This document shows positions 12,665-62,600 of a stretch of DNA of 64,000 nucleotides, piece by piece. A program made the translations under genes and the position numbers. How positions within the stretch are numbered: the first letter of the stretch is position 1; every line of letters begins with the position of its first letter. The stretch is from Saccostrea cucullata (lineage: Eukaryota). The stretch lies in the NCBI RefSeq assembly GCF_032062105.1, contig NW_026936290.1, positions 434,001 through 498,000 of the forward strand, given 5' to 3'. Below the pieces are notes generated by a model that saw only the letters and a list, made by a program, of their open reading frames with translations, did no database searches and had not been told where the DNA came from.

Positions 12665-13319
12665 TACGATATATATCTTGGTGAGCTTGAGATAAAAGAT
12701 ACCACAGAGTCTGACACATCTGTTTTATATTTGGATATTTTACTTGAAAAAGATGTTAATGGTGATCTAACAACCCGGCTCTGTGAAATACGTGATGACT
12801 TTTAACTTTTCTATTGTCAACTTCCCTTATTTATGCAGTCACATACTTTCATCACCTGCATATAGAGTTTATATATCTCAGTTGATTCGATACGTAAGAG
12901 CATTCTCTACGTATGAACAATTTCTAAAAGGAGGTAAATACTAAGTAATTGACAATTATGTTGATGAAACAAGGATATCAGCAGTCTCGGTTAAAGTCAT
13001 CATTTAGTAAGTTCTATGGTCAATACAATGACCTTCTCAGCAAATACAATTTATCTTTGAGAGAAATTTTAACGACATTTTTCATACTAATTGTTAATCC
13101 ATTATTTATACACTAAATTGACGACGTTTTTCCCGTTATTTTCCGATCATGACAAGGAGCTCACGGCTGGTGTGGCCGGTCAGCAGGGGATGCTCACTCC
13201 TCTATGACACCTGATCCCATCTCTGATGTGTTGAAGGTCCGTTTGGGCTCTGCTCCTATTTTGTATTGTTTTATGGACTTTTGATCTTGAATACTATTCG
13301 TTATCTCCATATGTTTCAT
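12665..13319 (+). mobile_element. Penelope-like (Naiad-type) retroelement 3' fragment, decayed RT thumb + 3' UTR
   Basis: ELEIKDTTESDTSVLYLDILLEKD..IVNFPYLCS..SPAY.VYISQLIRY..; shared 3' end ttgaatactattcgttatctccatat. Confidence 0.9.
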
Positions 13320-15362
13320 CAATTAATTTATGTAACCTCGATATATCCAAGGGTACTCTAAATGAAAAGGGAACACCGTACAGTTTACTGCATATAAACG
13401 ATAAGGTAAAAGTAGCAACAAATAAAATTCAGCAAAATTTTCCAATGCCTTATTTTTTGCGAGATTGTTGTATTGAAATTAAAAGCGAGATAAACTTTTC
13501 ACGCATTCTGGTAATTGTTCCATTTAGTCTTTTTAAATAATACATTGTATACGAAAATAGGGGAGAAATTTCTTGCAAATAAAAGGTAATTTTCAATTAT
13601 TTGCAGATACAGTTTTGTATTCATTTGAAGGAGAATTTGACCAAAATCTTATACGTGAAAATCAATTGGTATGAAAGTGACAGCCAAAATACAACAATGA
13701 TAGGTAATATTTACTATCAAGATTCTTTATCTACTATACAACTTACGAGATACTGACGTAAAACTAGGTTATTGAAATCACTGTAACATCGACGTAGACC
13801 TGTGTCAGTTGCCTGTCCCGTTTCAGAACTGAACGCTCGGAGTACTCTTTAGTTGAGTATATGAAGTAAGCTGTGAAAAGTAAACACCATATACAGGTAA
13901 TATAGGATATATAACTACCTAAAATAGGGGAAGATGACGTTAGAAATTATCTCGTTTTTCATACAGTTTAGATGGGCATTATCACCAGAAAAGTATCCAA
14001 ATATAAAATATACGTGACAGACTCGTACTTATCAGTAGAATTTTTAAATCTATGTGTCCAAGTAAAACTTTTTATATTAAATTTCACATACGAACGTCAA
14101 TGACATGAAGATTCCTCGCCCAATAATTCAAAAAGTATAAAAAGACTGTTATTATAGATTTATCATAAAACAGACAGTAAGCTGGTTATTTGATCTATTT
14201 AACGTATTTTTTCCTCGTAAACTCCCTGTGTAATAATCCATGGAGAGATAAAAACTTTGTCAATTTGGAAGGAGGTACTCGTAATGGAAAGTACATATAT
14301 AGAGAAAGTCATTACATGAAGTATCAATTTATATAGAGAGTCACAACCTAATTTCCACATGAACAAAACGATCAAATCGATATGGACAATATTGCTTCAT
14401 TCTAAAACTCTTTAAGCGGTTAAGTGTTTGTATCATCTATTTATTCAGTGGTCAATTGCAAGAAACAATTTTACATCATTGGAACACACTACTTTCTTCC
14501 TAAATCCTTAAACAAAAATATTGCCTCGACAATTATGATTCTTATGCAAAAGTTTCGGGAAAATGCTGAAATGTATGGGATTGTTTCTCCTGTGATTTAC
14601 ACACCAATAACTCACGCAAAACATTCCTTAAATATCTTTACTTGAGCGAATAAACTGAACCAGAACCGACTCTCAACTGAAGTAAAAGTAAGTATCTGTT
14701 GAGAGCATTTTAAAACTTTATTTTCCCCTTACCACGAACCATATATCTGATATGAATTGAAACTCATTTGCATTCCATTAAAATGTTTCTTCAGCCGGTG
14801 GTGTGGAAACAATGGCGACTTCAAGGAACAGTCTCTGTTTTTAATATCTCACTAGGACCAGGTCGCCATATAAAAAAATTACGTTATCGATTCCTCGACA
14901 AATCTACAGCTAATCTATGGCAAACTCAGCATATTAATGGATATAGAAGAAAGAAAGTCGTGGATTTGATTTTCTTTATTCATGATACATGAACTTTTCA
15001 TAAAAATAAAATTATAATTATATATTTTTGCCATTCTCAACATGTACAGATAATATATACTTTCATTTTGTTTTAACAATACAGAAAACACGTGTACTAC
15101 AAGAAGCGAATGGTGAGGGACCACTGATACGTCCACAGTAATAACCGGTGAACGATACGTCAGGTCGATAAATAACAGGGTTACATTCAGTATCACAATG
15201 GATAGAAGGCAAGTACTGGCACACACTATGACACAAACATCACTTTAATATTTAAAAAATCTTTCGCAAGATGGGATATGAAATCACTCTTCATAAAGCA
15301 CTTTTCTTTTTATGAATGAGATAAAAAAACAAAATTATGATAAAGGGTGGAAAACAAAAAAA

Positions 15363-15670
15363 TTATCGTCTGTAAAGGTGTTGCCACATCGCCATGGACT
15401 TCCGGTGGTTATTTAGCATGTCATTCCAATGTTTACCTTCCGCTTCCGGTCTGTTTGGTCCTATAATACACCGTCCAACAAATTCACCGTGACCTATCAG
15501 GTCATGGTCAAGCACCGTGACCTCAAGGTTACACTTTGCCAACATGTCTGCTGAAATGTTAAAGGTCAGAGCCTCGTTCCAGACAGGAGCTGTTGTGCTT
15601 CTTTTGACAGAAGTTTTCTTTCTTTTGACTTTTTTGCCGTCCACGACGAGTGACACCCGAACGTACGGGT
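15363..15670 (-). CDS. Syt: Synaptotagmin last coding exon (C2B core, stop TAA)
   Basis: tttcag|ACCCGTAC; DPYV, polybasic KKVKRKKT, PVWNEALTF, HWNDML. Confidence 0.96.
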
Positions 15671-18600
15671 CTGAAAAGGAAAAGTTATTTAATTTAGAGG
15701 GTGTTAAATTGTTCTTCACATATTCACCACTAAAATATTTCAAACGTTAAATAGCATGTTTTTCCTTCTCTAAGACATTATAGATGAACAGAATTAATTA
15801 AATACTGAGTATATTGAGATAAAGAACATTATTCGAGCTCAGAAGTTCATTAAACAATACAAAATAGGAGCAGAAAAAACACGGACCGCTACAACATCTG
15901 AGGTCAGATCAGGTACCATTGAGGAGTGAGCATCCTCTGCCAACATTACTCACGTATTAATGAAAGTTGTGATTAATGAAGACAAAGTGTTGACGACTAA
16001 ATCTTAGATTAAGAAATAATTTAGAATGTATGAGTTATTTTTATATAACGTACCACAGGATCCGCCCGCCGCGGTCATCACCAGCTCTGTAGCTTTTAAC
16101 ACGACTACCGTAAGTCTCTCTGCCGTGGGGAGATAACTCAGGGATAATAAAATTTCACCCATGTCATTGTGCTGTAAAAATAAAACAGCATTTCATATCA
16201 CGTGTCAAAAGAGTCTGTCAAATACCTCCACCTGTTGAGCTCAGCTCAGACATACGTTTTTACACATTTCAATGTAAAAACAAAAGAAAACAGACAAAAG
16301 AAAAACAAAAAAAAATAATGATTAATATGTCATGACTTATATTTCTACGAAGTATGTTATGAAAATAAATTAAAACTAAGCAAAAATACGTTAGAATTCA
16401 AAAAGTCTGAATTATGTATGATATTTATAATTATTGAAGTACCTGACTTTGCTTTTGAATGTCGCACCACATTTCTACGCTGTTTGTAACGTCAACTTGA
16501 CCCAAATTGACACTAACTTCTCCTAGTGTTTTATGGCGGGAAAATTTATCAAAGTCAAAGACCTGGAAAATCAATGTCCGCTCTTTCACTTCATCAAGTG
16601 TCACCGGGAACTTAAAGAATTCATTATAAAACGGATTGTGGGTCCGGCGTTTGACGGATGATTGTCGTATTTTCTCGTCGACTTCCGGAACCATACTAAT
16701 CCGGATGTAAGGATCGCCAAATCCTCCTTCTTGATCGAGCGATCTGTCCACCACAAGATCTTGAGCTGAAAAAAAAATCCAAATTTAGTTTTTAAAAAAT
16801 CTCTATCGAGCAGATGGTCCTGTTATTTGAGTTCGATGGATGTTTATAATCCAGTCGGAAATGATGCCAGTCGGAAATGATGAACATAATGTTTACCGTA
16901 ATGACACTATTTGGAAGTAAACAGAGTAATTCTTTTGATAAGAAAAAAATCATTTGATATTGCCATAAATTGAATGATTGACAGTTATTAAACAATTATT
17001 ACTGAGTTTTTATTCCACGTGTACGTCATTTTGCTATATGTGTCATTCCAGATTTAATAAAAAGGAAAAACTTCATGGCAATATAAGTATCCGTTTAACT
17101 TTTAATAAGTTTTTATAAGTAGAGCACACCAAAGTTCAAGTGTATTCATGTTAATTTACGATATGTATTCTGCGCACCGATTCAGTTAAGTCGGTCGTCT
17201 CACCTTCAATAAGATGAACGAGGACATCTGAGGTCCGGAAATCGTATTTGATTCGGATATGAAGTTTCCCCCGGCCCTGCTCCACAGAGGACTGCTGGAG
17301 AACTGCGTCCTTCCGGGGATAAAGATCCGGTCTTATAGCACCTGCAGAAAGGTGGATTTGATTTTCTTATCAAACGAAAAATAAATGGATTGGGCAGCAG
17401 GTATATTGGCTATGTAAGCCCTCTCAAATGAAAAGTTCCTGAATGTTAAACAATTTTTTCAAAGCAATTTTATGTAAATTTCATTTTTGATACATTCTTC
17501 CGTTTATTGAAAATCATTATCGTTGATAAATGTCACACAGAGATGATGGGTATTATATTATAAATAACACATCGCTTTCTACTGAAAACAAAATCCTCAT
17601 ATTCCAGTGATATTCATTCACAAGACTGCTGAGATAAATTTAACTTTTTATTGTCAGGATCTATTTATTATAATAAATGTAGTATTCTTATCTTTCATTT
17701 TTTTTTGTAAATTCGACACTTGATTAAGTGCTACTGACATCAAATTATAGCTTACATTCTTTTTTCTATTGCATGAGAGAACAGGGAATTGATATTATTT
17801 CATATTATTATTATATTATTATTTGATATTATTTTATTGAAATATATGGATATCAGGAACAGTATTCAAACTCTATAGTCCATAAAACAATACATAATAG
17901 AAGTAGAGCAAAAACAGACTTCCAAAACATCAGAGGTGGGATCATGTGCCATAGAGGAGTGAGCGTCCCCTGCCGACCGGTTACACCCGCCGAGTGCTCC
18001 TTGTCATGTACGGTAAATAACGGAAAAATCCATCGTCAATTCAGTGTAACAATAAGTATGAAAAACGTTAGTCAGCATTTGACTCAATGATAAATTGTAT
18101 TTGCTGACAAGGTCATTGTATCGACCATAGCTTAAAAAATGATGCATTTTAACGAGACTGTTGATATCCTTGTGTCATCAACTTATTTGTCAATAATTTA
18201 CCTAGTTTTAGAAATTGTACATACCGGTACATAGAACATGTTCTTGCGTATCGAATCAGTTGAGAAATATAAACTCCGTATGCCCGTAATGAAGGTATAC
18301 TGCTGTATAAGTAAGGAAATTTTACGATTGAAAAGTTAAAGTCAACACGTTTATAATAGAACTTGGTTGTTAAATTATCTTTAAGGTCTAATTACCATTA
18401 GTGACCCTTAATAAATAAAACGATTCAAAATATAAACAAGAATAGATATGGGTTACCCCATATCCAAAGATATTCGACTTTTAGATTTAATATGCTTATC
18501 AGTGTTTATAATGACGTTAATAAAAAAACTGTCATGTCTAGTTACGGAACTGGTGTAAATTTCGTGAGGTCACCCAGTCTCCTAACAAACGGTATGTGTA

Positions 18601-21600
18601 CACATAGGCCTACATGAACCTGTGTCCGCAAGACCAACATTAGCTCGATCTAAACACGTGCGATGGAGCTGTTAAACGCATCCGGCGAGCTCGGAGAAAC
18701 ACGTTTTTTTTGCCGAGAAGTTACGATAGCAGACAAAACTTTTCTTTTCTTAATTAGATCATATGAATATGAATTCTGATTAATAAAAATTATACAATCC
18801 CTGTTGAACTATATATAGTTTGTTCTAACATTTGCATCTGCAACAACTTGTGTTTAAAATGGCCGTGTTAGGAAAATCAAGACCAGATCGGAAAATTCTA
18901 AACTGAAAACCGTTTTTGTTTTGAAAATTACTGAAATATACTAATTAATGTATTTGTCGCAGAAATTACTTACATTATTCAAGTTCTATATAAAATGGTA
19001 GGCCTATGCTGAACTTCAACACGAACCCGAATGTCCGACCCAGTTCTCGTTTTGCTAGCACATTGTTTACAAAGTGTACACACGTGAGCAGAATCCAGCC
19101 AGGGATTGAAAATTCCGTCATTTAATAATATACACACACAGAATGATTATTTTTTTCTTAAAAGGAAATTGTATGATAATTAACAGACTATAAACATGTA
19201 CTTAATACAATTGTTGATATAGTATTATCAATTCATCGGTGAAAAAATATGAATCGAAGAATGACCTAAATATTCTCTATTATCAAACATGTAAAAAAAA
19301 AAAAAAAAAGGCTGAGGAGGGAGCGAGCGTAGGAATATTGATATTTTTTATTTGCATTTCGGGGGGAAAGTGATTTTCTAATAATATTTTGACGTTATTT
19401 TTTATTTCTTTAACGTATGAAATACACAACTTTACTCTTATCATGAACAATAATGTTGTATCTACTTAATCATGATGGAACTATTTTGGTCGGACCAATT
19501 TGTGTGAGCTGCCGCTAAAAACAGTAATATATCTTGCATTAATAGTATGAATTGATCGAATATATTAAAAAAAAGCTTGAAATGCCCTGTTTGTTAGAGA
19601 GAAGGCCGCTTTTCTGTATAGTTTTGATAAAATTTTGAGAAATGTAAAAGGGTGCCCAATTGTATGATTTTGAAAACTAATCACCAAAGTTAGGATCAAA
19701 TATGAGACTATCTGCGCTGGTGTCGCTGCGGGCGCTTATGCTGCTGGTTTCCTCCGTGAACGGGTCACTTTTGATGCTGCCCCTGGACATCGTGGAGATG
19801 CTCCCCCGGGACTGGGGACCTGTGGAGGGTTGGACTGGGCGGTGCTCCTTTGTCATAAACGCTTCCTGTTAATATAAACATAAAAACGGTTTATATTTGG
19901 AGAATAGACACATGCTTCGTTTGATTACTATTCCTATAAAAGCTCAAGAGTGAAATAACATGACCATTCACATTTTTGCATCAAATTATGTTTTACCCCC
20001 TAAATAGTTTTATTTGATGGTGACCTAGACAGATAATCAAAGGCCAATGCCCGACCTACATACACATGGAAACTGGGACATAAAGAGGAGTACAAATCTA
20101 TGCGGGTCTGTACTTATTTCGCAATCAACAATTAAACGCATTATCTGAATCATAGTAATGACATTTGTAAAAAATTAACCGTCTTTGACTTCATGTAAAT
20201 CGAACTAACACTATTACTGAGTCATCTGGGTGACATTTCAATGACAAGTAACACAAAATGTCAATTAACTTCGACCACTTAGCTACTCATGAACTGTTAA
20301 TTGTCGATGACCTGTACCTAATTCAGCGTGCACTCGGACAGTTTTGCTTAACAGTCCCTTATTTAGTACATACACTGGTCAAGTGTAATCTGGTTGTCTT
20401 TAAAACTTCAAAAGGCCACAATTCTGACAAAATTCATTAAAATGGAGCAAAATACAATCTTGATCTTAAATTCATCAAGGCACTATCATATATTAAAAAT
20501 CTCAATGTCCGCATCCTGCACGAGTTCAGGAAAAAAGCGCTAAAAATCAAGTGTGAAGACTGAGAAAGAGAGAGTGGCTGATAATCAATCAGACGAGGAG
20601 GAAACAAAGTCGCCTCCGAATTCATTGTTATGGGACGAAATTAAGTATCCATACATATATTTGACCACGGTTTGTGTATTGTCATAACTTGAAGGAGGGT
20701 TTAGCTTTCAGAATAACGGTCATCAAAATATTGACCTATACTTGAATCAGAAAGAGTAAGAATTGCGATTAAACATTGATCATTCATTTATCAAACTTTG
20801 AAATCTTTTTTTTTTACCCCCCACTGAAATTTCAGAGACACACCGAAGTCTGGGATTCCATGTCCATCATGTATGTTCTAAAAGATAAATACTGTTCATG
20901 TTAAATACCCGATTCCTGTCACCCTCTGCTGAATAAATACATGCTTTTGCCCACCTTTCTTCTTTTATAGTATTTTGTGATGTCCTTTGCTGTATTCATA
21001 TATATGCTTATACTCACATTTCTCCTTCTATAATATTTTTTTTCATATCCTTTACTGTATACACATACCTTTCTCCTCCTATAATATTTTGTGGTATCCT
21101 TCATGCCAATGTGACTTAGTTCTGAACCCATGGCGTAACAACAAAATACTGTCTGTTATAGCCAGGCAGTTATTGGATATATAGTTAGTATTGTTTTGAC
21201 ACGTGGGAAGAGAGAAAATGGTATACGTGTAGAGAGGCATGATATATCAAATGTAAGCTTGTATCCAAACATGAAATGTCAACAGGATCAGGATTTCTTA
21301 CCAAACACCGGCAAAATGAGACAAAATGAGACACTAAAGATAAACAGAAGTGTCGGGTGTGAAAGAATTCAGACCAGCCAACACCAAAAAACGGATCTAA
21401 ATCCAATCCTTGAGCTATATATTGTATTCTGTAAAAAAAAAAATGTTACACGATTCATAATCTGTTTGTTGACACTTTTCAGTGAATAATGTTAAAAGGA
21501 TGAATGTCTACAGAATCGCAATTCAGTACTCTGAAAATTATTCTTCCCAGTTATACTCTGAAGTTTACTCTTAAAAAGATTTGTGCAGTTCCTAATTTAC

Positions 21601-24600
21601 AACATCCACAGAGTCTTTGGAGGCCATGACTTCTTTAAAAATGTTGAAATATTGATAGACATTAATTGTGCTCCTTAGCTATCCATCTGACTTACATACC
21701 CTTGATGCAGGATTTATGCAAAAAATATGCAAAATAATTTACACAACAATTCCGTCAATAAATTTTGAACGATGGATCCTTTGCCTAAAATCATTTACAA
21801 AATAAAATTGGTGAGTTGTGAGTTGATGCCGAGGAAGAAGGGGTCTTCAGTTATTAAATTAAAAAAATTCTTTTGTTCCCTCATCCTTCATCTAAGAATT
21901 GTAGAAAAGAAGTTGTAGATGATTATAGGTTTCGAAAATTGTATGTCCTAGACTGGGGTTTTTCATCAATACAAAAATCACATTGAATGTAATACAAATG
22001 CAACTCTTAATGTATAAGTTCAATTATTTAAACTACATTTTCATGACCAAAATTTTTAAATAAGAATAAAATGCTGACTGACGTTTTTCATACTAATTGT
22101 TAGTCCATTATTTATACGATGAATTGACGAAGGATTTTTTAGTTATTTCCCGATCATGACAAGGAGCACACGGCGGGTGTGACCGGTCAGCAGGGAATCC
22201 TCACTCCTCTATGGCATCTGATCCCACCTCTGATGTTTTGGAGGTCTGTGTCTGCTCTGCTCCTATTTTGCATTGTTTTATGGACTTTGATATTGAATAC
22301 TGTCCGTTATTTCCATATCCTTCATGCATAAAACAACCAAATACATTTTCATACTTCAATATTACTGATTCTCTCCTTCTGTCAATTGATTTGAGGAAAT
22401 AAGGGCACTCAAACAAACAAATAGGCAGAAGCGTGCTTGGTATTTTAACAAAGAGAACACTGCTATTCAATTTGTTGTTGTAACCTCCACCCCCAACCCC
22501 TTCCATTGCAACAAACACAGAACAACCAAAATTATTTTCTTAGTTGTTTTGTTTTAGTAGAAAAATTCATAACTCAATTTTTAATATATCATAGAGTTTA
22601 TGTTACGTTAAACTAATTATCTAATTTTGTTGTGTTTACGTTTACTTTTACCTAGTGTTATCCGATTAAACTTGCGCATTCAGATACTAATGCATTGAAA
22701 AAGAGTACTAATAGTAGTATGCCTAGCTGGTGGTAATCCTTAAAGTGATAAATATTTTAAACCCAATCCTATAACTCACAGTTTCCTATTTTTTTTCGTG
22801 ACTCTAACAAAACTGTGTTAAACACTAACAGTGATCAAATTCGTATTATCACACGTGTTGTAGTAACCACATGTTTGATTTTTAATGCTTCTCGTGACTT
22901 ACATAGGTGGGATACCATTTTAATACTGAAATATTTGTGATTGAAGTAGATTTTATCTTATTAAAGGCGTGTAGACACTGTTAAAAATGCATTTTAAGAT
23001 ATTTAATAAAATATTATAAAGGTCTGCTTTAAAAGCTCTTTAATAAGGAAGTTATCAAAACTATGGATTTCGGGACATATATTCTTGCACTTTCACGAAG
23101 TAAAATTTATCCGAAACAGTTTAGGGAAGTAGAACTAAAGAAATGATATAACAATTTTAATCCTGAAACTTCAGAATAAAAAGTCTGGAAAGTCTGGAAA
23201 GCTAGGCAACTCATCAAATTTAATTGTCCGTGCTCGGTGATGTATGCAGTTTAAGCAAATTAACAAATTACAAAACACAGATGTTTGACGTGATGAGATG
23301 TCATTGTGAATTTTAATAATATTCATAATAATATTCATGTAAGTTCAATTCATTCATCTCAATTTTCATGACTAAAATTTCATAGATGTATTGATAAATT
23401 TAAAAGTACAAAAGAAAAGTTTGATGTTATATACCCCTCTAATGCTTAGTATAGAATATATTTCCTTCTTTTGTTCTAACAAAAACGTTAGGGAGAAACA
23501 AAATTTTTGTCATTATTGTAGGAATACATGTATGTGTTTTTTATCCAATTAAGGACATACGCAAGGTACCTTACCTACTGATAATTTTTCAAGATATTCT
23601 TAATTTAAACTTATGATACCATTACATGTTCTTAGACAAAAAATCAGCATGTGTTACCAGGGGTTTTGAAAAGATATCAAGTTTTGAAAAAAATTTCATT
23701 AATCAAAGAAAAATGTACAAAAATTACAAAACATAAATTCCAGATTTTTTTTCATCAAAAATTGTTTTAGAAGAGGTGTACAGATCCATATACAGACATA
23801 AAAAATATTGCACACAGGTCCTTCATTTAGTGGAACTCTTCAACTCCAGGGAAGAACCCAATAAAGTTCAAACTACGTTGCGTATGACCTTAACTGTAAC
23901 TCAGAACATGCTATAAAAATTACCCTTTTTAAAATTCCCATTTATTTCTAAAAAAAACTAAATTCTCGTGCACAGCCTTTAAAATCTCCACTTCATTCAT
24001 ATTTTAGTGTGAGGATAATGAATTGGAAAGAGTTGGCTGGGAACATGACTCTGGTGTGATTACCTGTCAAGTTATCTTATTCTGAATACAGTTTTATTTT
24101 TTATCCATCATAATACTAGTCAAAACGTGATAAACAATGGGTTGTGGTGTTATGTTTTGGTGGTATAAAAGAATTTGGAAAACACATAAGGCCTTTTAAG
24201 TTTAAGTACAAGTTTCTTATTAACCACTTGTTTCGTTCTACACTAGATGTAGCTTACACTCGTTGATCTTGATATTTGCAGACAAAAATTAATTAATAAA
24301 AAATTAACATGTTTAAATCCGAACAAGACAAAGATGCAAATTAATTGTTTGATTTTGTGGAAGTTAAGTGTAATATATGGAAATAACGAACAGTATTCAA
24401 ATACTCTGAAGTTGACATCAAAAAAGATACCTGAGTTTCTGATTGACAATATCTATGTGGTTTTTGGAGACCAGTTCTTCCAACAATCTATTGGAATTCC
24501 AGTGGGTACAAATTGCGCTCTGTTATTAGCAGGTCTGCTTTTATATTCATATGAAGCAGAATGTGAAAACACTGTCTGTGGCCTTCAACTCATTATTTTG

Positions 24601-27600
24601 ATATATCGACGACGTATTGTCAATTAACAATGGCAATTTCCATTCCTATGAAGATACGATATATCCTGGTGAGCTTGAGATAAAAGATACCACAGAGTCT
24701 TACACATCTGTTTCATAGTTGGATATTTTACTTGAAAAAGACGATAATGGTAATCTAACAACCAAGCTCTATGACAAACGTGATGAATTTTACTTTTCTA
24801 TCGTCAACTTCCCTTACAATGTACTTATGCAGCAATATACCTTCATCACCTGTATACGGCGTTTATATATCTCAGTTGATTCGATACGCAAGAGCATGCT
24901 CTACGTATGAACAATATCTAAAAAGAGGTAAATTATTGACAAACAAGTTGATGAAACAAGAATATCAGCACTCTCGTTTAAAGACATCATTTCGTAAGTT
25001 CTTTTGGTCGATACAAAGACATTGTCAACCAATACAGTTTATCATTGAGTCAAATGCTGACTGACTTTTTCATATCAATTGTTAGTCCATTTATACACTG
25101 AATTGACGACGGATTTTTCCGTTGTTTCCCGATCATGACAAGTGGCACACGGCGGGTGTGACCTGTTAGCAGGGGATGCTCTCTCCTCTATTGCACCTGA
25201 TCCCACCTCTGATGTTGGAGATCCGTGTTTTCTCTGCTCCCATTTTGTATTGTTTTATGGACTTTAATATTGAATACTGTTCGATATCTCCATATCCTTC
25301 CATCAAGCTCAAAAATCCATCAAACAATACAAATTTTGACGCAGAGCCGGACCTCTAAAACGTTAGAGGTTGGATCAGGTGCCATTGAGAAGTGATCATC
25401 TTCTGCAGATTATTCTATAAGCCCCTCTTTCTTTCTGTAACATACCTGTTGTAAATCATAGAACTTTAAGGTCCATTGATTCTCTAGCAAGAGATAACTC
25501 TTAATGACATATATAATTGCCTATAGTTTTCAAAGCTGAGCCACTTTTGACCGAATTTGATCAGCTAGTTATTCTACAATAGCTTTTATTTACTTATATA
25601 ATACATTCTTTTGAAGATCATGAGATACAGCAACATTTTTTTTTTGAATGAGCAGAGGGTTTTTGATTTTGAAGCGATAAAAAGAGAGATTTTGATTGTT
25701 CTATGCATTTGTCCCTCCTATCTTGACTTTCCAGAATAAAATATAATTTAATTCTAATTTAGAAAACAACTACGTATTATGCAGTAAATTATCGCAATAT
25801 GTCTGTAAACAAATTATTATACCAATTAGTTTTAAATAAAACATACTGTTGTTTATGGAAATCATACAACAAGAAACAAAGAGAATGGTGACTGAGATCT
25901 TTGAGTTAAAATGAAATAATTGGAGATAATGAAGTTTCTGAGCTCAAAAATCTATAAAACATTACAAAACATAAGCAGAAGAAACACGGACCTCTAAAAC
26001 ATCAGAGGTTGGATTAGGTGCCATAGAGTGAGCATCCCCTACCAACCGGTCACACTCGCCATGTGCTCCTTGCCATGTTCAGGAAAAAAACGGAAATGTC
26101 CGTAAACAATTCAGTGTGTAAATAATGGCCTAACAATCAGTTTATGAAAAAGTCAGTCAGCATTTGGCGTATACTCTTGGATTGTGTTTGCTGACAAGGT
26201 CTTTGTATCGACCATAAAACTTACGAAATAATAACTTTAAACGAAAACTGCTGATATTCTTGTTTCATAAAATTGTTTGTCAATTACCCCGTTTTAGAAA
26301 TTGGTCATACGTAGAACATGCTCTGTGTTTCGAATCAACTGAGAGATATAAACTCAATATGCAGGTGACAAGGGTGTTGCGTAAGTAAGGGAAGTTGACG
26401 ATTGGAAGTTAAAGTCATCACGTTTATCATTAGCTTTGTTGTTAGATAACCATTGACGTCTTTTTCTAGTAAAATACCACAATATGAAACATATGTGTCA
26501 GACTCTGTGGTATCTTTTATTTCCACTTCACCGGGATATATCATAAGAATGGAAATAGTAATTGACAATACCTCGTCGATAAAAAAAAACATTGTTCTTT
26601 TAATAGGCAACCGAATATTGGTTTCAAGTTTTCAAGATAAATATTTGGCAATTTTTTCCCAAATATTGAGTTTCAGCTAGATAATTTGTGAAATGTTGAA
26701 TTAATACGAGAGCTTTTTGAAATAGTTGTATTATCAATTTGTTTGTAAATAGATTTCCTGGTTTTTTTCCTTTTTCTTTTTTTTTTTTGGAAAATTCGTA
26801 CGTAGAAAATATTCTTGTTCATAAGTAAAGTGGGCGCAATGAACTCCATATGCACTTAAGAAATGTTATATACATGTAATACATAGAAATATTATATAAA
26901 ATAAACAAAGGGAGTTTATTTATATTCAGATTTATGTAAAAAGTGTGTTGTCATATTACAAGCTGTTTGTTTGTATGTTGTGTAAGGTCACTCTTGAGAA
27001 TTTTTCACACATGTGGAGACGCCACCACTTGCCGGTGGAGAGCTGCAAATTTTGTCCTTTACTCGGAACAAATGGCCATTGAGCAGGGAGAAATCTTTTC
27101 CTGCCAGTGCCTACTTCGACACGGGACCTCGGTTCATACGGTCTCATCCGAAGGACCGGTCTCTTCGTCCCATAGTGAGGATCTACTTTGCCACTCCAGA
27201 ACAGACTCTATAAGCACTGCGCCACGCAGGAGACGATTTTCCAAGTAAATTATACATTACATGAAACAAATGTGTGAGACTCTGCAGTTTCTTTTATTTC
27301 GAGTTAAAACAGAAATATTAATTGAATTAATGTTGGAATGAAAAGGAATATGGAAAATTGATAAAACGTCGTCGATATATCAAAATATAGAGCTGGAGGT
27401 CAAAGCAAGACACCTGATTTTCATGTGGAAGTATTTGAATGAGGTATTTTTGTGAACGTTTTCAGATATTAAAGTCAGTATAATTTGGCCTCCAAAGACA
27501 GCAAAGATATCCAAGCAACCTTTGAAAATTAACTTCGGGTACGTAACTGTACAATCAGAATGTATTTAAACAAAATAATTTGCCAATAAACACAGACAAG

Positions 27601-28729
27601 GTATTTAAATTCAATGGTTCCACATTTCGATAAAAAAAACAACAGCTGACTTTGGAATTCAAAATCCTGATGGAATTTAATTTATTCGTGGCGAAATGAT
27701 TGTTTGGTTTGGAGAGAAAAAGCGGGCGGTGAATGCAGAATCATCCCTAAAGTCGCTTTGCCTGTTGCAAAATGTATATGACATTGCTCCAAAATTGAGC
27801 AAGACCAAGGTCTTTTCAGAGTTTGATGCTAGCAATGTATTCGGGTCCCCCTAGCTCCAGAGAGTTGTCACCTTTCTGTATTCAATACTCCTTTATGACG
27901 ATACTGATTTTAGTGGGTATCTTTCGGAATATTTCAGCTCTTGAAATATTTCATCAACCTTCTTAATCTCGCATGTTCGAGATATAAATTGATAGAGCAG
28001 TCATATTTCAGCACCCATTAACACTTAAACTGTAGATAGGACTAAGGAACCATCATCTTCTGCAACTTGCTACGAAACAAAGCAATCAGGAAGAATTTCC
28101 ATTCTAAGTTGTAAAATTTTTATGCAAGATTTTTAGCTTATTAAGCTAATTAGTACCAAGGTTGGAATTTTTTTACCTATAGAGAATATAATTTATATGA
28201 AGATCCAAGATGCTTCAAGAGAATAACTTACCTTTGACACTTTAATCATTGTATATTAGCTAGACTTAAGGTCATCATTAAATTGTGATGCTTTAAGAAT
28301 CATAAGTATTTGTTCGTCTTTCAGAACCAATTATCAAACAAAACCACTGTATTCATTCAAATAACCTTACAGGTGATAGACGTTCTGCCATCTCAAAGTA
28401 ACTTACTCCTAGAGAATCTGAGGAAGCTGATTATTAAAGGAATTGGGTTTTTGTGAAGCTTTAGGGATCGTCAACCTGTTTCTGTTGTGTTCTGTTGCTA
28501 TATGACATAAGTAACTAAATCTTATAGCGTGTTCAATTACCTGGGAGGCGGTAGAAATGGACATCAGAGATGGTGGTTTGTAGTCTCCAACAGCGTCATA
28601 TCCGTTGAATGACGTAATATTTTGCCTGTGTTTCCTGTTCCGGTACACTCTACACAATACAAAACAGACCACGCCCGCTACAACACCAGCCAGACCCAGG
28701 ACGACGCCGAGAACGACGGCGGTTGTCAT
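15363..28729 (-). CDS. Syt: Synaptotagmin (N-terminal TM, tandem C2A/C2B), Syt-beta-like; join(28541..28729,19685..19865,17204..17341,16443..16765,16054..16171,15363..15670), 1257 nt, 418 aa
   Basis: All introns are GT..AG and the exon phases are compatible (0,1,1,0,1). An in-frame TAG lies two codons upstream of the ATG. TM VVLGVVLGLAGVVAGVVCFVLC; C2A GKLHIRIKYD..EGGFGDPY..FDFDKFSRH; C2B GEILLSLSYLPTAERLTVVV..KKVKRKKT..HWNDML..MW. EGGFxDPY/PEVD resembles Drosophila Syt-beta (from memory; paralogue not verified). Confidence 0.95.
15812..15941 (-). mobile_element. PLE 3'-end fragment in last synaptotagmin intron
   Basis: Reverse complement of the PLE 3' UTR (gaggtcagatcaggtaccattgaggagtgagcatcc). 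Confidence 0.8.
16054..16171 (-). CDS. Syt: Synaptotagmin coding exon 5 (HNDMGEILLSLSYLPTAERLTVVVLKA...; start of C2B)
   Basis: ttacag|..TGTG|gtacg, 118 nt; canonical C2B opening motif. Confidence 0.95.
16443..16765 (-). CDS. Syt: Synaptotagmin coding exon 4 (C2A core)
   Basis: tttcag|..CAG|gtact, 323 nt; DPY, NPFYNEFFKF, FDFDKFSRH. Confidence 0.96.
17204..17341 (-). CDS. Syt: Synaptotagmin coding exon 3 (AIRPDLY...GKLHIRIKYDFRTSDVLVHLIE; start of C2A)
   Basis: tgcag|..GAAG|gtgag, 138 nt; IxPDLY motif and first C2A strands. Confidence 0.93.
17838..18378 (-). mobile_element. PLE 3' fragment
   Basis: Reverse complement of 12760-13319. Confidence 0.9.
19685..19865 (-). CDS. Syt: Synaptotagmin coding exon 2 (Ser-rich linker EAFMTKEHRP...DPNF)
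   Basis: GC-rich island, aacag|GAA..TTTG|gtga, 181 nt, open in the frame required by both neighbours. Confidence 0.88.
21069..21131 (-). CDS. Putative alternative first coding exon of synaptotagmin (MGSELSHIGMKDTTKYYRRRK; myristoylation motif + polybasic patch); further in-frame donors after 21018 and 20955
   Basis: tacgccATGG context; AAG|gtatgt donor in phase 0, matching the exon starting at 19865; strong upstream acceptor (T-run)acag| at 21428. Confidence 0.6.
22068..22325 (+). mobile_element. PLE 3' fragment
   Basis: atgctgactgacgtttttcatac..gatcatgacaaggagcacacggcgggtgtgaccgg.. Confidence 0.9.
23553..23889. mobile_element. Kolobok-type MITE (TTAA TSD, GG termini), 337 bp
   Basis: TTAA-ggacatacgcaa..ttgcgtatgacc-TTAA. 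Confidence 0.78.
24372..25410 (+). mobile_element. PLE RT fragment (24402-25302) flanked on both sides by inverted 3'-end pieces
   Basis: FLIDNIYVVFGDQFFQQSIGIPVGTNCA, YIDDV, LYDKRDEF, VYISQLIRYARACS with frameshifts; inverted tails at 24372-24401 and 25303-25410. Confidence 0.92.
25915..26582 (-). mobile_element. PLE RT/3' fragment
   Basis: IDEVLSI..IYPGEVEIKDTTESD..; reverse-complement 3' UTR. Confidence 0.9.
26960..27200 (-). mobile_element. SINE-like copy (same family as 4806-5055)
   Basis: ggagacgccaccacttgccggtggagagctgcaaat..ggtctcatccgaaggaccg. Confidence 0.8.
28541..28729 (-). CDS. Syt: Synaptotagmin coding exon 1 (start + TM, MTTAVVLGVV...STASQ)
   Basis: Acceptor ttacag| opens the exon at 28739, ATG at 28729, donor CAG|gtaatt after 28541; 63 codons, phase 0. 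Confidence 0.9.
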
Positions 28730-30613
28730 CGTCTACTTCCTGTAACACAATCGTAGAACGCTTGTTTACTGTATACTGGCAAATACCCGGTAATTTACTG
28801 AGGGCTTTCAGTATAATGATATTTGATTATTATTTGCATCGATACACCATCCCGATTTCATAGATTTTTTTTTAGAATAGGGAAATATCTGTAAACATAT
28901 TATGGTACTTATCAACTTTCTGAAGAAATGAATCTTTTATAATTAATAAGAGATGATATATTCTTCGAGCTACTGGTTCAATCTTTTGAATTCATTTCTT
29001 TCTTTTCACTTCTTATAAATAACAGCTTTTCGGCCAGCTATAAAAATTGTGTTGTCACAAAATTACAGAGAACTGATTCCCAATGTACTGCATGTACTCC
29101 TTTGTAGCATCAAATTAGAACCAATTTATACAGTATATACAGAAAATATTGGAAAAAATTAGACGAAGGCCTACAATAGAAGGAAATTCTATGAAAGACT
29201 TTAATTCATTTTTTTTACCTAAAATAATTCACATGGTACATTGCAATGTAATTGCAAAATTGTTCAACAATGACTGTTTTGTTACCTTTTTGATAAAATC
29301 TTCGTTTTATGGAATCACTAAGCTTTTGTTACTCTAAATCAAAGTAAACAATCATTTTTATGACGCTATTATTAACATGTCGTATGTCGTATCCTGTTTA
29401 TGTTCTTTGGAAACCACGAACTCTCTGTTTATGAATTCTAGATCTGGCTATAAATAGACCGTAAAATGGCGCCAGTCCTTCCTGTCCAACGAGTCCGTTT
29501 CCTTCACGTAATTGACATGATCACAAACTCCAGAATAAAGGATTGGATATAAAGTGATCACAGTTTCTATGTACCAACAATCGTTTGATTTATTTGATGT
29601 GCGTTATTCTTTTACTTGATAAACCCATGACTTTATTATTGTTTTTGAACAACATGAAAGGAACATTGACATCGATAACGAAGGGTAGTGCACCGCCGTA
29701 GATATAATCGTTATTTTATTTTATAAGATGTCGTTATTGGTATGGCTTTTCCATTCATTCTTTTCAAAGCTATAGAAAGGGCAACATTATAATTTGATAA
29801 TGAAAATTGTGCATTAAATAACGTAACATAATGATTAATTGGGCATGGGTGATGGGAAATTACTTTCGACAAAACTGCATGTTTCTTTTAATTTTCTCTT
29901 GTGTGCATATCTGTGTAACCAAATGCAAGAATTGGGGACGGGTTTTGTTAAAAACAAGTAAGTAGGGGCTGCCCCTCTCAACCCGGATACTACATGCAGG
30001 TGCGTAAAAATGTTATACCCTGAGTCTGTGGAAGATAAAAAAGACAAATTTGAATTTTGTTAAATGAAAACATTTTTGGGGTCTTGAAAAACAAGAAAAG
30101 TGGACAACAAGTATAAGATGAACGAACACCAGAGAAAATAATATGTGATAGAAATAGGTTAATAGCCGTTTGAGCAAACCTTTTTTAATTACATATAGGT
30201 ATATACATGCATGTATATAAAAATGAAGCATATTCAAAGAGGTATGTTGGAAAAAAAAACATGTATTCTTGTCAGAAATATTCAACAGAGGACCATATGC
30301 CAAACTGTCAGCTTTAAAACATTTAATGTTAAATGAGATAAAATAATTCAATCTTAATTTTTGAGTATTTTTCCCCTTATACTTGATATACTTATCATAT
30401 ACTATTACATTAAGAACCTAGAAAAAATTTAATTCGGGTCTCAGTTCATTTTTATCGAAAAAGGATGCTTTTTTATCAGTTCTATTTGATTACAAATAGG
30501 TTCCCATTATTGAATATCAACTTTTCAGACCAAAAATATATACCTTGATCACACTCAACCTTCATTTCCGGAAAAGTTCTAAAACGGAAGTAATCCGAAA
30601 AAGGTCGATTTAA

Positions 30614-32770: not shown

Positions 32771-33173
32771 CTTTGTTTACCTGAATAAATCCTGGGAATC
32801 ATTTCCTCCACCACAAAGCTCAAAATCTCGAATATCAAATCTCGAGAGAATTCATTATCACGTACACAAGTACATGACGTGGGGAGACCGAAAGGAAATG
32901 CCAATTGATAACTCTTTCTTCAGCATCCAGGTGAGTCGTATCTTGCTCTACGTGATATAAAATCTGAAGACTCCTGTCGACATGAAGTCGGCTTGGTCGG
33001 CTAAGAGCAGCCCCTGTGAAGACCGCCTATAGAAGCTGTCGTTAGCGAGTGGGCATTGAATCAATGACAAGTCTTTGTGCGGATCGGTAGCGATGACTTC
33101 GCTACATTGGCACCTCTTCCATTCGTATTACCACGCACCGAAGGCCTTTGCCCCCCAAAGAACAAATATACAC
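32771..33173 (-). other. Probable non-coding 5' UTR exon of synaptotagmin
   Basis: Locally GC-richer; acceptor ttttacag| at 33173; tandem donors CAG|gtaaac (32781) and AAG|gtaag (32771); stops in all frames; a further donor CAC|gtgagt at ~33347 upstream. Confidence 0.45.
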
Positions 33174-57627: not shown

Positions 57628-57766
57628 CTACAGTGGCTGGTTAATATCACTTTTGATCAGGTCGGCAGCTTTCTCTGCTATCATGATCGTCGCTGCGTTT
57701 GTATAGTCTGTTATTTCTGGTATAACGGATGCGTCAGCAACACGTAGACCACTTACGCCCTTTACT
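57628..57766 (-). CDS. GMC oxidoreductase last exon ([13 protein letters not shown]...[16 protein letters not shown])
   Basis: ttacag| acceptor; hallmark C-terminal GMC motif; stop TAG. Confidence 0.94.
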
Positions 57767-59603
57767 CTGTAAAATTAGAAAAGAATCCATGAATATTGAA
57801 TTTTACATTAAAGTTAAATTTCTTTGTGGCATGCACTTTTAAATATACAAAGTGTTACAGTGAATACATTTTAAGCAACATAGACTCAAAGAACTGTGTA
57901 TAGAAATCCCAAGAAGTGTTGATCAAATGTCAAAATTCAAACACTTAAATACATTACATCAACGTATCTAAGTCGAAATCAAATTGCCAAAAGGCTTCAT
58001 GAAATTCAGAGTTGGTTTTTGCTTATTGTAATTGCATGCATTGTTTCTTTCGGGAGTGAAAAGGAATCACAACCCTTTGTTTATTTCATTTCCATTTACA
58101 GAATGTGAAAATGCCAAGAAGGATTGCTCAGACAAGTATAACATATAATTAACAAAAATAATTTTACAAGAATACTTGCAAATGTTACACATGTTTAAAA
58201 ACTTAGTAATTTAAATTAAAATAATGTTTGAAATACCATATAACAGACATCAGAAGATTAAAACCTTTAACTAACATACTTTAAATCTGGACCAACAACT
58301 GTTGAACCGTCGTTGACGGAACCCATTTTATTTGTTGAGACAGCGTTGTGTCCTGGTTCCATGAAGTGACGTATATAACAATCCCAGTAGGCATCAGAGT
58401 TACGTGCATGATGTAGACAACCCGAAAACGAAGGACCTAAAGAAGCTTTCATTTCCTGAAACTCGGGCGTTTGTATCAGTGCCTGGGCTTTCCTGATTCC
58501 TGTAAGTAAACAAAACCACTGTACAGGCAAGAGAAAACAAAACCAATCTTTTTATCCAATTCTTTTGGAAAAACTACTATAAACAAACTATTTTCCGCGT
58601 TTGTCTTTTCTTGAAAGAATAAACATTCTATATAAAAAGATTTGAACATTATTTAATAGATCGCTGCGAAGAATATTGGCAAGTATGAGAAGATAAAAAA
58701 AATCGCAGATAATTCTCCTAGGGGAATAAAAGATTGTCAACTGCGATTAGTTATACCTTTTATTAACACTCTGATATCACCAGGAGATGATAAATAGGCC
58801 GGGTCGATGACGGGGGGAACCTTGGGGTCCAAACTATTCAATGTTAAAGTCCCCCTACTGGAAGGGTGCAACAGTTTGATGTTGAGGGTTATTCCATCTC
58901 TGCCCCTCGCCAAGGAGTACCAAGATTTTATAAACTGTAAATTAATGGAGAATTTGAGAAAAATTTAAGATTTTATTGAGTTTTGATCTTTATTTCTTGT
59001 AATAATTATTGGTTGAATGGAAAGCTGATATTTATACTTGGTTCTTACTTAATAACCATAGGATTAAGATTGATTTTACTTACAGAGACATTTTTATTTC
59101 CTACATAGTCAATCATTGGGTCATGGTCACCTAGGGAACTTGTAAAGGTTATCTGAAGGTCGGGATAAGCGATGATAGAGGTCGGGTCAGATTGGAAGGT
59201 CAAAAGAGCCTCAGTTCCACGAAGTTCTGCTAGCATTCCTGAAATTATCATATTGTATATATAGTATATATATTATTAAATTTGACAAAAAAGGAAGATT
59301 ATTTCCTTAAATAGACATATCAAGAGTCCCCTGCAACAGAAGAATTTTGTATTTAAATTATAAGACATATTTACAAAGGTTTAAATTTAAATACAGAAAG
59401 ATTTTATGAACACTGAGATCATGAGAATTAGTGACAAAATGTGATTACTCGTTACCTGTTCTCTGAAACAGATACTGGTTGTTCTTCACCTGATCAGCTA
59501 TAGCGTGTGGCTTGATGGTTGGTTGCTGAACAAGAACTCTAAGACTGACCGTAGGATGGTCTTGAAGAGATTCCCCGACTGGTACCAAAGAGATGGGTGG
59601 TAC
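57628..59603 (-). CDS. GMC oxidoreductase (glucose/choline dehydrogenase-like), 3' part; join(59456..59603,59084..59238,58757..58934,58280..58499,57628..57766); 5' exons not found in window
   Basis: GT..AG introns with consistent phases; motifs [94 protein letters not shown]. Confidence 0.93.
58280..58499 (-). CDS. GMC oxidoreductase exon (IRKAQAL...[11 protein letters not shown]...GPDL)
   Basis: ttacag|..TTAAA|gtatgt, 220 nt. Confidence 0.92.
58757..58934 (-). CDS. GMC oxidoreductase exon ([12 protein letters not shown]...PVIDPAYLS)
   Basis: ttacag|..AAAG|gtata, 178 nt; GMC C-terminal domain motif. Confidence 0.92.
59084..59238 (-). CDS. GMC oxidoreductase exon ([10 protein letters not shown]...YPDLQITF...NVS)
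   Basis: tttcag|..TCT|gtaagt, 155 nt. Confidence 0.88.
59456..59603 (-). CDS. GMC oxidoreductase exon ([17 protein letters not shown]...QRT)
   Basis: ttacag|GTA..ACAG|gtaac, 148 nt. Confidence 0.9.
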
Positions 59604-62600
59604 CTGTAACACAAAAGACACCCTAATTCACAGTTTATCGAGGAAACAAAAGCTTTATTGGAATTTATTTTATTATTTCTCTAAAACATTCCCGAAGGGA
59701 TTTTAATATTTTATACCCTTCCATGGTTACATGATTCCACCTTTGATATTTTAGCTTGCTCTGACTTTTTGTTTGAAAGGAGCTTTGAGCTTGAATATTC
59801 GTTTTCTCTATATATCATGCATACCTTTATACATAACAAAAGACTGAATGTGAAAAAGCATTACAGGAATCGTAGAGGGAACAGCTTAAGTTTTTAAAGT
59901 ATAAAAATGCTTATTCTAGTATTTTGATTGGAAGCTTTAACGAAATTCCCTACTTTAAGCCTTTTTGTTGCCCGATATTTGTCTTTGGATTCCAATCTTT
60001 AGTTGTTTAAGTCCCAATTAAACAACTTTAATTAAGTAATTCGGCATCCATAGAACGATGTTCCTTGATAAGATAACATCTTCATTTGATATAGCAACAT
60101 GCTCCCTTCAATGAACTTGCAAACAATTTGATATGTGACATGTGATAATGAAATTTTTGATCGATTCTTAAAGTTCCGTTTATATTTAAAAAGCAGTTAA
60201 AACGACAATTGCAAGTCTTTCAATGATTTTGAGTATTGTTGTTTTAAGTATTGAAAAATCATATTTTTATATTATTGATTTGGTAAATTTTGTAATGTTA
60301 TATTTTCTAAAAGTTCTTTGAAGTATTTTTAAGTGACTAAACTTAATTAAACCTTTTCTTATTCGCTGTTTCACAGTACTACTGGAGTTGTTCCGTAACT
60401 CCTGTTCGTAATGAGTAAAGAAAAAAGCTTGTTAGATTTTTATTATCTTATACTAGATCCTAGATGTACATTGATATGTTATTACTCTAGCAAAAATATT
60501 ACTAATACATGGTGATGCAAAATTCGGCGTTTCCCTTTAATTCCTCATTCATCTTTACAAGACTTGTTTTTCGATATGAATTGATTTTAACATTTTGCCA
60601 TACTCCAAAATTCGTAACTGCAGTTGACAATGTTCTAAAAATAAATGTATGACATTACCGCTTTTGGAATCAACAGCTGATGTGAAGACATTTGGTAGAG
60701 ACAGACTAATAATGAGCTGACAAAAGCAGCTAGTTTAGCTTTACAGAACGGCCTTCTGTTTGACTCGAGTAAGCCACAATCGAAACTATCTTTAACTGAT
60801 ATAAGGAGATTACAGTATCGGTTAATCTTCTATAACTGCCTTTTGTTCTTCTGGTTTAGGGCATAATCGACAATCGTTAATTGAATATTGAGAAATGGAG
60901 CACATTAACCATTTTCCGATACATACGACGCAGAAAAAGGGGAAAATGTAATTTTATTTAAAATAACTGGCCTTCATGGATACAAATATTTCTCAAAAGC
61001 AAGCATCCATTAGGAAAAAAATATATAGAAAATATCATATCCACCATATATTATATCTCTATCAAAATTTACCCAAAAAACATTCTATGACAAAATCAAT
61101 AATACTAGACACTGTATGTCAATCCTTAATTAATACTCGTTAGATGTGAACAAAAGAACTGACGATTACATTTTCAATGAACTGCTAAAAATGACAAAGT
61201 GCATTCATCTTAATTCAAACAATGACTTAATGTTTGTTTGCTTTTTTTAAGATTGCATATTTTAAAAGATTTGTTACGTAATGATCGACATTAAAATTTC
61301 ATGCACCCTTATGGACATAACATTCTTATATGTTACTTTTTAACTTTTTTATATTTCTTCGAAGAAAACAGCTCATCAACATAGAAATTAAACATATACA
61401 TGTACACAGTTGTTAATCAGTACAGCCCCCTGTCTGACAATGCTAGCTTGTTGTTGCTTTTAACGTGCGTCTGTATGTAGACAACAAGAAGTTGGATCAT
61501 GCGAAGTCAAACGTTAGGTATATGTTTATCAAATTAAGAACTTCATCAGAAAAATTTTTCCCGAAACAATCCATGTGAATAGTTTAGAAAACATTTTTTA
61601 AAAGGACAAGAATTGTATATTAATAGATAAAAAGATAACAAGTTGTTCTAATGAAAGGAAATTTCCGAATCTAATATTATAAAGGTTCTACTTGTCAGAT
61701 TTATCTTCCTTTATTCCTTCACAACAAATCATAATCTTCTAGAGCCATACAAGGGTTTTCGGTCTGCTTCGCTGGGAGGTAGGCGGGCCATCCTTGGCTT
61801 ACAAATACTTATACATATATTTAGTAACTTTAAAGGAGTTCATTGAAAACAAGCAACGAATTTAAAATATTTAGAAATACATTTAATGTAAAGTTTGTTT
61901 CGATGGCTTGAGTTTAATTATGAATTAAAATTTATATATCTTCAAACAAATTAAACAAAATAAAATAATTTGTGTCCATCACATTTTTTACCAAAGAAAA
62001 TGTTTTCAGCAAGGATTTTCTTCAGTGGAAATAATGAGAATAAGAGTGATTTTACATGCACTTCATATGGTGTCCTATATCTCAATTCTCAACTGAAAAC
62101 TGTCTTCATGTCTATTGTTCACCCTAAATCCTTCGATGTGATCGCTGTTTTGGTTTTACATTAAATGTTGTAAAGAATCAGGGATCTCTTTAACAACAGA
62201 ATTTACAACTTCAACAAAATATATTTTTGACTTGTTTCAATTTTATTTCTATTTTTTAAAAAATAAATAAATAATTTGATAACATTTTTTTATTTGAAAA
62301 ATCTTAAAACTTATCAAAATTATCTGGTAGGCAAGATATTAGAAACGGATAAAAATTTTGGTCTTCAGCCCTGAATTGTACTGCATTCATATTTTCAATA
62401 ATAAGAACTCAGACACGTAGAAACCAAACACACTATGTTGTTTGTTTAATAGATTTCAAAACTTGTGTTATATTGAGTCAATAAAGGAGTAGATAATGTG
62501 CAAGGGTTGATCTAAAAAATTCCAAAAACAATATATTTAAATCTGTGAAGAGTGAATAAACAGGGAACCCTGGAAATGAATTTCAGAGGTGAGATCAGAA

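Follow-up and report, generated by a model that had tools for sequence, protein, structure and literature searches.

A conserved alternative first exon of bivalve synaptotagmin-beta replaces the transmembrane anchor with a predicted acylation signal

Can one synaptotagmin locus of the oyster Saccostrea cucullata supply both an integral membrane protein and a form held to membranes by a lipid? The question arises from a short open frame within intron 1 of a tandem-C2 gene, which an initial annotation of the sequence had proposed as a hidden alternative first exon exchanging the transmembrane (TM) segment for a myristoyl plus polybasic anchor. We analyzed the whole 64,000 nt stretch around it (contig NW_026936290.1, positions 434,001 to 498,000), hereafter the window, in whose coordinates all positions are given unless stated otherwise. 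The gene lies on the minus strand and its six coding exons join into one open frame of 418 aa, the TM form, identical to RefSeq X1. Its parts are as follows:

32771..33116 (−): non-coding first exon of the TM isoform, matching the 5′ UTR of Crassostrea TM mRNA contigs
28541..28740 (−): TM exon, acceptor 28740, ATG 28729, 63 codons, phase-0 donor; the model equals XP_062583561.1
21069..21131 (−): alternative first exon, coding part, 21 codons MGSELS...YYRRRK; the joined model equals XP_062583563.1 and orthologues exist
21069..21131 (−): features of this exon: Gly2/Ser3/Leu5/Ser6, basic run, phase-0 donor AAG/gtatgt
19685..19865 (−): shared exon 2, Ser-rich linker
17204..17341 (−): shared exon 3, pre-C2A motif and start of C2A
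16443..16765 (−): shared exon 4, C2A (Pfam C2, E 9e-19)
16054..16171 (−): shared exon 5, start of C2B
15363..15670 (−): shared exon 6, C2B and stop (Pfam C2, E 1e-20)

The non-coding first exon, whose 5′ end is not fixed and whose donor at 32771 is putative, is conserved in S. echinata, O. edulis and C. virginica. An exon-3 acceptor at 17365, 24 nt upstream of 17341, in frame and adding 8 aa, was considered and set aside, the annotation and relatives using 17341. Elsewhere in the window, exons of a GMC oxidoreductase-like gene are found at 57690-59700 on the minus strand (open frames 58964-58740 and 58551-58270), and positions 1350-2130 are occupied by a tandem repeat in which each strand carries long open frames. 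Downstream of the gene, both Crassostrea loci have an opposite-strand neighbour with a phytochelatin synthase domain (locus positions 19626-20603 and 18425-19416), in place of which S. echinata has a Mutator-like gene.

The gene is synaptotagmin-beta, Craxton's 'invertebrate Syt13'. A tandem of C-terminal C2A and C2B domains is present, Pfam C2 being matched twice and Syt1 C2AB aligning over residues 105-373 (E 5e-64), and a single N-terminal TM helix is found in the TM isoform (19-residue hydropathy 2.8) and not in the alternative one (0.1). Beyond molluscs and other lophotrochozoans, the best homologues are arthropod proteins named 'synaptotagmin beta' together with deuterostome invertebrate proteins. 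In a quick tree of the C2AB region, built without bootstrap, with unnamed outgroup rows and leaving out rows with partial C2AB, lophotrochozoan and arthropod Syt-beta form one clade apart from other synaptotagmins (SH-aLRT 98), which includes a dipteran protein bearing the N-terminus of Craxton's Syt13 variant 2. Syt15/Syt17, our first guess at identity, was dropped on the homologue list and this tree. Ca2+-sensing synaptotagmins carry five acidic ligands per C2 domain, a set that is incomplete here: compared with Syt1, the fifth Asp of C2A is a Lys and the first lies within an inserted loop, while in C2B the first Asp is an Ala and the fifth a Glu. These changes in both domains suggest that Ca2+ binding and sensing may be weakened in oyster Syt-beta, whereas insect Syt-beta is reported to keep some of the ligands lost here.

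Within intron 1, on the gene's strand, tacgccATGG at 21131 opens 21 codons that end in phase 0 after 21069; joined to exon 2, which begins at 19865 in the same phase, they form an open frame of 376 aa. All of this had been stated in the initial annotation and was reproduced, as was its reading that the segment is usable only as an alternative start: entered from the TM exon through an acceptor at 21428, the frame meets a TGA after 19 codons, and the segment thus cannot be a coding cassette. What did not hold is that the exon was hidden, since the 376-aa model shows no differences from RefSeq X2 (XP_062583563.1). RefSeq also lists an X3 of the same gene, whose start lies within exon 2. Models of this collection are normally RNA-guided. 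The layout of TM and TM-less first exons was moreover described for arthropod Syt13 in 2010 (Craxton, PMC2823689), and the architecture is therefore known.

An ATG-GGN frame with Ser/Thr6, a phase-0 donor and at least five K/R occurs once in the whole window, considering both strands, and arises in 0.1% of 2000 shuffled versions of the 8.7-kb intron; this pattern was set only after the exon had been seen, so the chance figure is a rough guide and conservation the stronger test. The exon is single-copy in the assembly, both as DNA and as peptide, and is accordingly not a repeat or mobile element. Other parts of the gene's introns (24250-25350, 17850-18400, 22070-22330 and 26340-27250) hold repeated remnants resembling retroelement fragments, pieces of which recur elsewhere in the window and in the introns of S. 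echinata and O. edulis.

All 13 bivalve taxa examined have an orthologous phase-0 exon within intron 1, which answers the search of other bivalves' introns that the initial annotation had proposed; the MG..S start and the donor, which it had expected to persist in related oysters, are kept in all of them. Genomic loci showing the exon with its phase-0 donor come from S. echinata, O. edulis, C. virginica, C. angulata, Pinctada and Pecten. A scan of intron 1 of the genomic loci for ATG-GGN frames returned the exons already annotated in O. edulis and C. virginica and, ab initio, those of S. echinata, Pinctada and Pecten, where only the TM form is annotated. Annotated TM-less isoforms spliced to this same exon 2 come from C. 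gigas/C. angulata, C. virginica, O. edulis, Mytilus, Mizuhopecten, Mercenaria, Ruditapes, Mya and Dreissena. With S. echinata 18 of 21 residues are identical and the codons differ by six silent and three replacement changes (pN/pS 0.14, Fisher p 0.002); pN/pS is 0.32-0.55 in nine other oyster pairs, with silent sites near saturation. Outside Gly2, both length (20-34 codons) and sequence vary among bivalves. O. edulis also has a truncated second copy (XP_056016869.1) that keeps the MG first exon and C2A and is devoid of C2B, and two loci are listed in Mercenaria and Dreissena as well.

Beyond bivalves, no MG exon was found in the stretch of Lingula scanned, and in gastropods, a nemertean and insects the TM-less exons have starts other than MG, often basic or Cys-bearing, which indicates that myristate is not a universal need. 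Gastropod starts are, for instance, MMQLSKFL and MFCLRC, and the clams Dreissena, Mya and Mercenaria have a third TM-less first exon, basic and lacking Gly2. Molluscs have several independent TM-less N-termini.

Transcript data are available from Crassostrea; for S. cucullata, a look-up of 20950-21430 listed no RNA run. Two alleles of its 376-aa protein are represented by 29 Logan RNA contigs (23 and 6), each allele as one unbroken frame, and one contig mapped to the C. angulata locus jumps from the alternative exon to exon 2. The TM protein is found on 309 contigs, so that the TM form is probably the commoner. Among ten contigs of a 330-aa fragment, two begin at 'ag' plus exon 2, the fork common to both first exons, as expected if both forms occur in one sample. 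The proposal that an alternative N-terminal exon replaces the TM exon is therefore borne out by RefSeq X2, spliced Crassostrea RNA contigs and oyster-wide conservation: this is a real, conserved and already annotated alternative first exon of known architecture. That it might be a chance open frame within an AT-rich intron is refuted by annotation, conservation, purifying selection and spliced contigs in relatives, and we give this reading practically no weight.

How the exon is reached is a separate matter, which concerns two features upstream of the ATG:

21132..21300 (−): probable short 5′ UTR and intronic promoter, placed from Crassostrea contig starts
21429..21445 (−): poly-T plus ACAG, probably an unused acceptor; AG missing at the aligned S. 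echinata site

The initial annotation had assigned the exon a strong acceptor, and as sequence it exists: a good-looking poly-T/ACAG ends at 21429, and an exon entered through it would start at 21428. If used from the upstream non-coding exon, it would make the exon an internal one, with mutually exclusive second exons under a single promoter, a layout implied by the coordinates of the initial annotation, and it lies in a block (21066-21478) that is 78% identical in S. echinata. Yet the AG is not conserved at this very site in S. echinata, so the acceptor probably does not belong to the exon, and its use would place ATGs at 21272 and 21240 upstream of the start, the frame of the latter overlapping it out of frame. 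In addition, each of the 14 Crassostrea contigs inspected has its 5′ limit 27-59 nt upstream of the ATG, and seven of them, when compared, ran colinearly with the genomic sequence, none including the upstream non-coding exon of the TM mRNA; contigs cannot prove a transcription start and these come from another genus. CACGTG and TATATAT, about 74 and 52 nt before the ATG, are common to S. cucullata and S. echinata. Taken together, the contig ends, the missing AG, the upstream ATGs and these shared motifs make an intronic promoter the better reading: the exon is probably the first of its transcript, with a promoter of its own and a short 5′ UTR, and splicing into it from upstream appears doubtful.

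The 3′ side of the exon raises another alternative, as 21101-20947 consists of three degenerate copies of the exon end (pairwise alignment scores 37-46, background maximum 24), a triplication that pairwise alignment detected and Tandem Repeats Finder did not:

21010..21052 (−): second degenerate copy of the exon end, in-frame donor after 21018, from pairwise alignment
20947..20987 (−): third degenerate copy of the exon end, in-frame donor after 20955, from pairwise alignment

Both extra donors, already pointed out in the initial annotation, are indeed in phase 0 and would give 393 and 414 aa. Were all three donors used, the protein would carry one, two or three basic runs (with Cys after the first), a species-specific charge rheostat. 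The repeat spacings of 51 and 63 nt both keep the frame without a stop, the donors match the consensus at 8, 8 and 7 of 9 positions, and most of the differences between copies 1 and 3 are silent. These silent differences, however, are largely ancestral states common to S. echinata; copy 2 bears a 2-nt insertion; 21069 is the only annotated donor; and the triplication is absent in S. echinata, O. edulis and Crassostrea, no relative having the repeats. The same gene of C. virginica has about ten 59-nt tandem copies of another exon end, the 3′ end and donor of the C2A exon, arranged out of frame (locus positions 12755-13470), which shows that such repeats arise without selection on frame. The triplication is most likely a neutral local duplication, and graded use of three donors seems improbable.

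What, then, would hold the TM-less form to a membrane? Gly2 is invariant in all 13 bivalve taxa, and all four Gly codons are used among the seven genomic loci. The five oysters begin with MG(S/T)(E/Q)(L/Y)S and have 4-7 K/R in 20-21 residues, while the eight other bivalves begin with MG(I/L/V)CL(N/H/A)(R/K), without Ser6, a start of the myristate-plus-palmitate type. N-myristoyltransferase (NMT) favours Ser at position 6 and, less strongly, at 3, together with a hydrophobic position 5; myristate has to be paired with a second signal, either palmitate or a basic cluster (PMC5170614). Favoured residues of the window exon are Ser3, Leu5 and Ser6, and an NMT gene is present in the assembly. Glu or Gln at position 4 and His or Gln at 7 are not classic best residues for the enzyme. 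Judged by its residues, the oyster start fits the NMT rule exactly, and the two bivalve start types would match the two second signals. Ser6 is fixed just where Cys4 was lost, but the swap from Cys to a basic run is not clean, as clams carry both. There are 6 K/R against 2 D/E in the 21 residues of S. cucullata and 4 against 1 in C. gigas; oyster net charge is +3 to +5, with an acidic residue after the basic cluster. The RefSeq X2 model of C. virginica is initiated 11 codons further upstream, at an in-frame ATG whose use would hide Gly2; in C. angulata the corresponding frame has two codons. Of the myristoyl plus polybasic anchor originally proposed, the Gly2/Ser6 motif stands as conserved in oysters, the basic cluster proves modest and lipidation is a prediction, though we consider myristoylation of Gly2 in the TM-less form quite likely.

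The exon could also be real and its product soluble, or bound only electrostatically, with Gly2 kept for the start context (+4 G) or for N-end stability. Soluble TM-less splice forms are common among synaptotagmins (PMC2823689), orthologous exons outside bivalves do without Gly2, and the RefSeq X3 form could be read in the same sense. A +4 G, however, would also permit Ala, Val, Asp and Glu, and Gly is nevertheless the residue in 13 of 13 taxa, accompanied by an equally invariant Cys4 (8 taxa) or Ser6 (5 taxa); we therefore hold a soluble product to be unlikely, and a predicted acyl anchor remains the preferred reading. A more elaborate version, in which oysters exchanged palmitate for a basic run as the second signal and the three S. 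cucullata donors grade membrane affinity, possibly with a phosphorylation-driven electrostatic switch, seems improbable.

First-exon switching of lipid anchors is common, as in c-Abl 1a/1b and PKA C-alpha1/2. Nor is this a new kind of system, given that the isoform is in RefSeq and TM-less first exons are known for the gene. Craxton's alignment of Syt13 (PMC2823689) comprises arthropods only, and the arthropod TM-less exon (MSGLGPAACW... in Drosophila) has no Gly2, unlike the bivalve exon. The RefSeq X2 forms of this gene and of C. gigas, C. angulata, O. edulis, Mytilus, clams and scallop are the same protein or use the orthologous exon, under the automatic names synaptotagmin-C/1/5/6/10-like and with no mention of lipidation. 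Src-family SH4 anchors offer a parallel in form, with Gly2 combined with Ser6 and a basic run as in oysters or with a Cys near the N-terminus as in other bivalves (Src: myristate plus basic residues; Fyn/Yes: myristate plus palmitate; PMC5170614). The proteins are unrelated, however, the bivalve Cys is at position 4 rather than 3/6, and the oyster basic residues are mainly at 11-21. Syt17 (B/K), which the initial annotation had invoked, likewise has tandem C2 domains but no TM and is anchored through N-terminal fatty acylation (PMC10404969), and the parallel holds as an analogy; Syt17 is nonetheless the product of a separate gene with an S-acylated cysteine cluster and no TM alternative, whereas the oyster exon has no Cys and its gene also makes a TM form. 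Craxton's Dblc2 are TM-less double-C2 proteins whose listed N-termini are MG with Ser/Ala at 6, but have no TM form, and Syt6 delta-TM is a TM-less splice form of a TM synaptotagmin not reported as lipid-anchored in the same work (PMC2823689). Our literature search, made mostly without subscription papers, returned no myristoylated synaptotagmin isoform, no oyster Syt13 study and nothing on the acylation motif. An acylation signal on bivalve TM-less Syt-beta, in two versions, thus appears to be a new reading.

As a whole, the locus is probably best explained by two promoters yielding a TM form and a TM-less, probably lipid-anchored form with the same C2 tandem. From the upstream promoter, the non-coding exon would be spliced to the TM exon and exon 2 to give integral synaptotagmin-beta of 418 aa. 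A second promoter, of putative position in intron 1, would precede a short first exon that carries ATG 21131 and is joined through donor 21069 to exon 2, giving 376 aa without TM; annotation and the RNA contigs of relatives show this form, which keeps the same linker and C2A-C2B. A lipid-anchored product would bypass the ER insertion route and may occupy the cytosolic side of plasma or Golgi/endosomal membranes, binding reversibly, so that the same C2 tandem could work from a membrane other than that of the vesicle-borne TM form. Of the claim that one locus makes integral and lipid-anchored proteins, the two forms are confirmed and the lipid anchor stays predicted.

The TM anchor is treated as central in synaptotagmin work, and fast release was not supported by a Drosophila Syt1 in which a myristoylation motif takes the place of the TM (PMC8164606). 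Few studies deal with Syt-beta itself, and no mutants had been described as of a 2021 review (PMC8164606). The present analysis puts a name to an orthologous group that mollusc annotations mis-label, and contributes an exon missing from the annotation of each of three taxa (S. echinata, Pinctada and Pecten). A gene that keeps a TM form and an apparently myristoylated one across bivalves would be a ready test of what the anchor decides.
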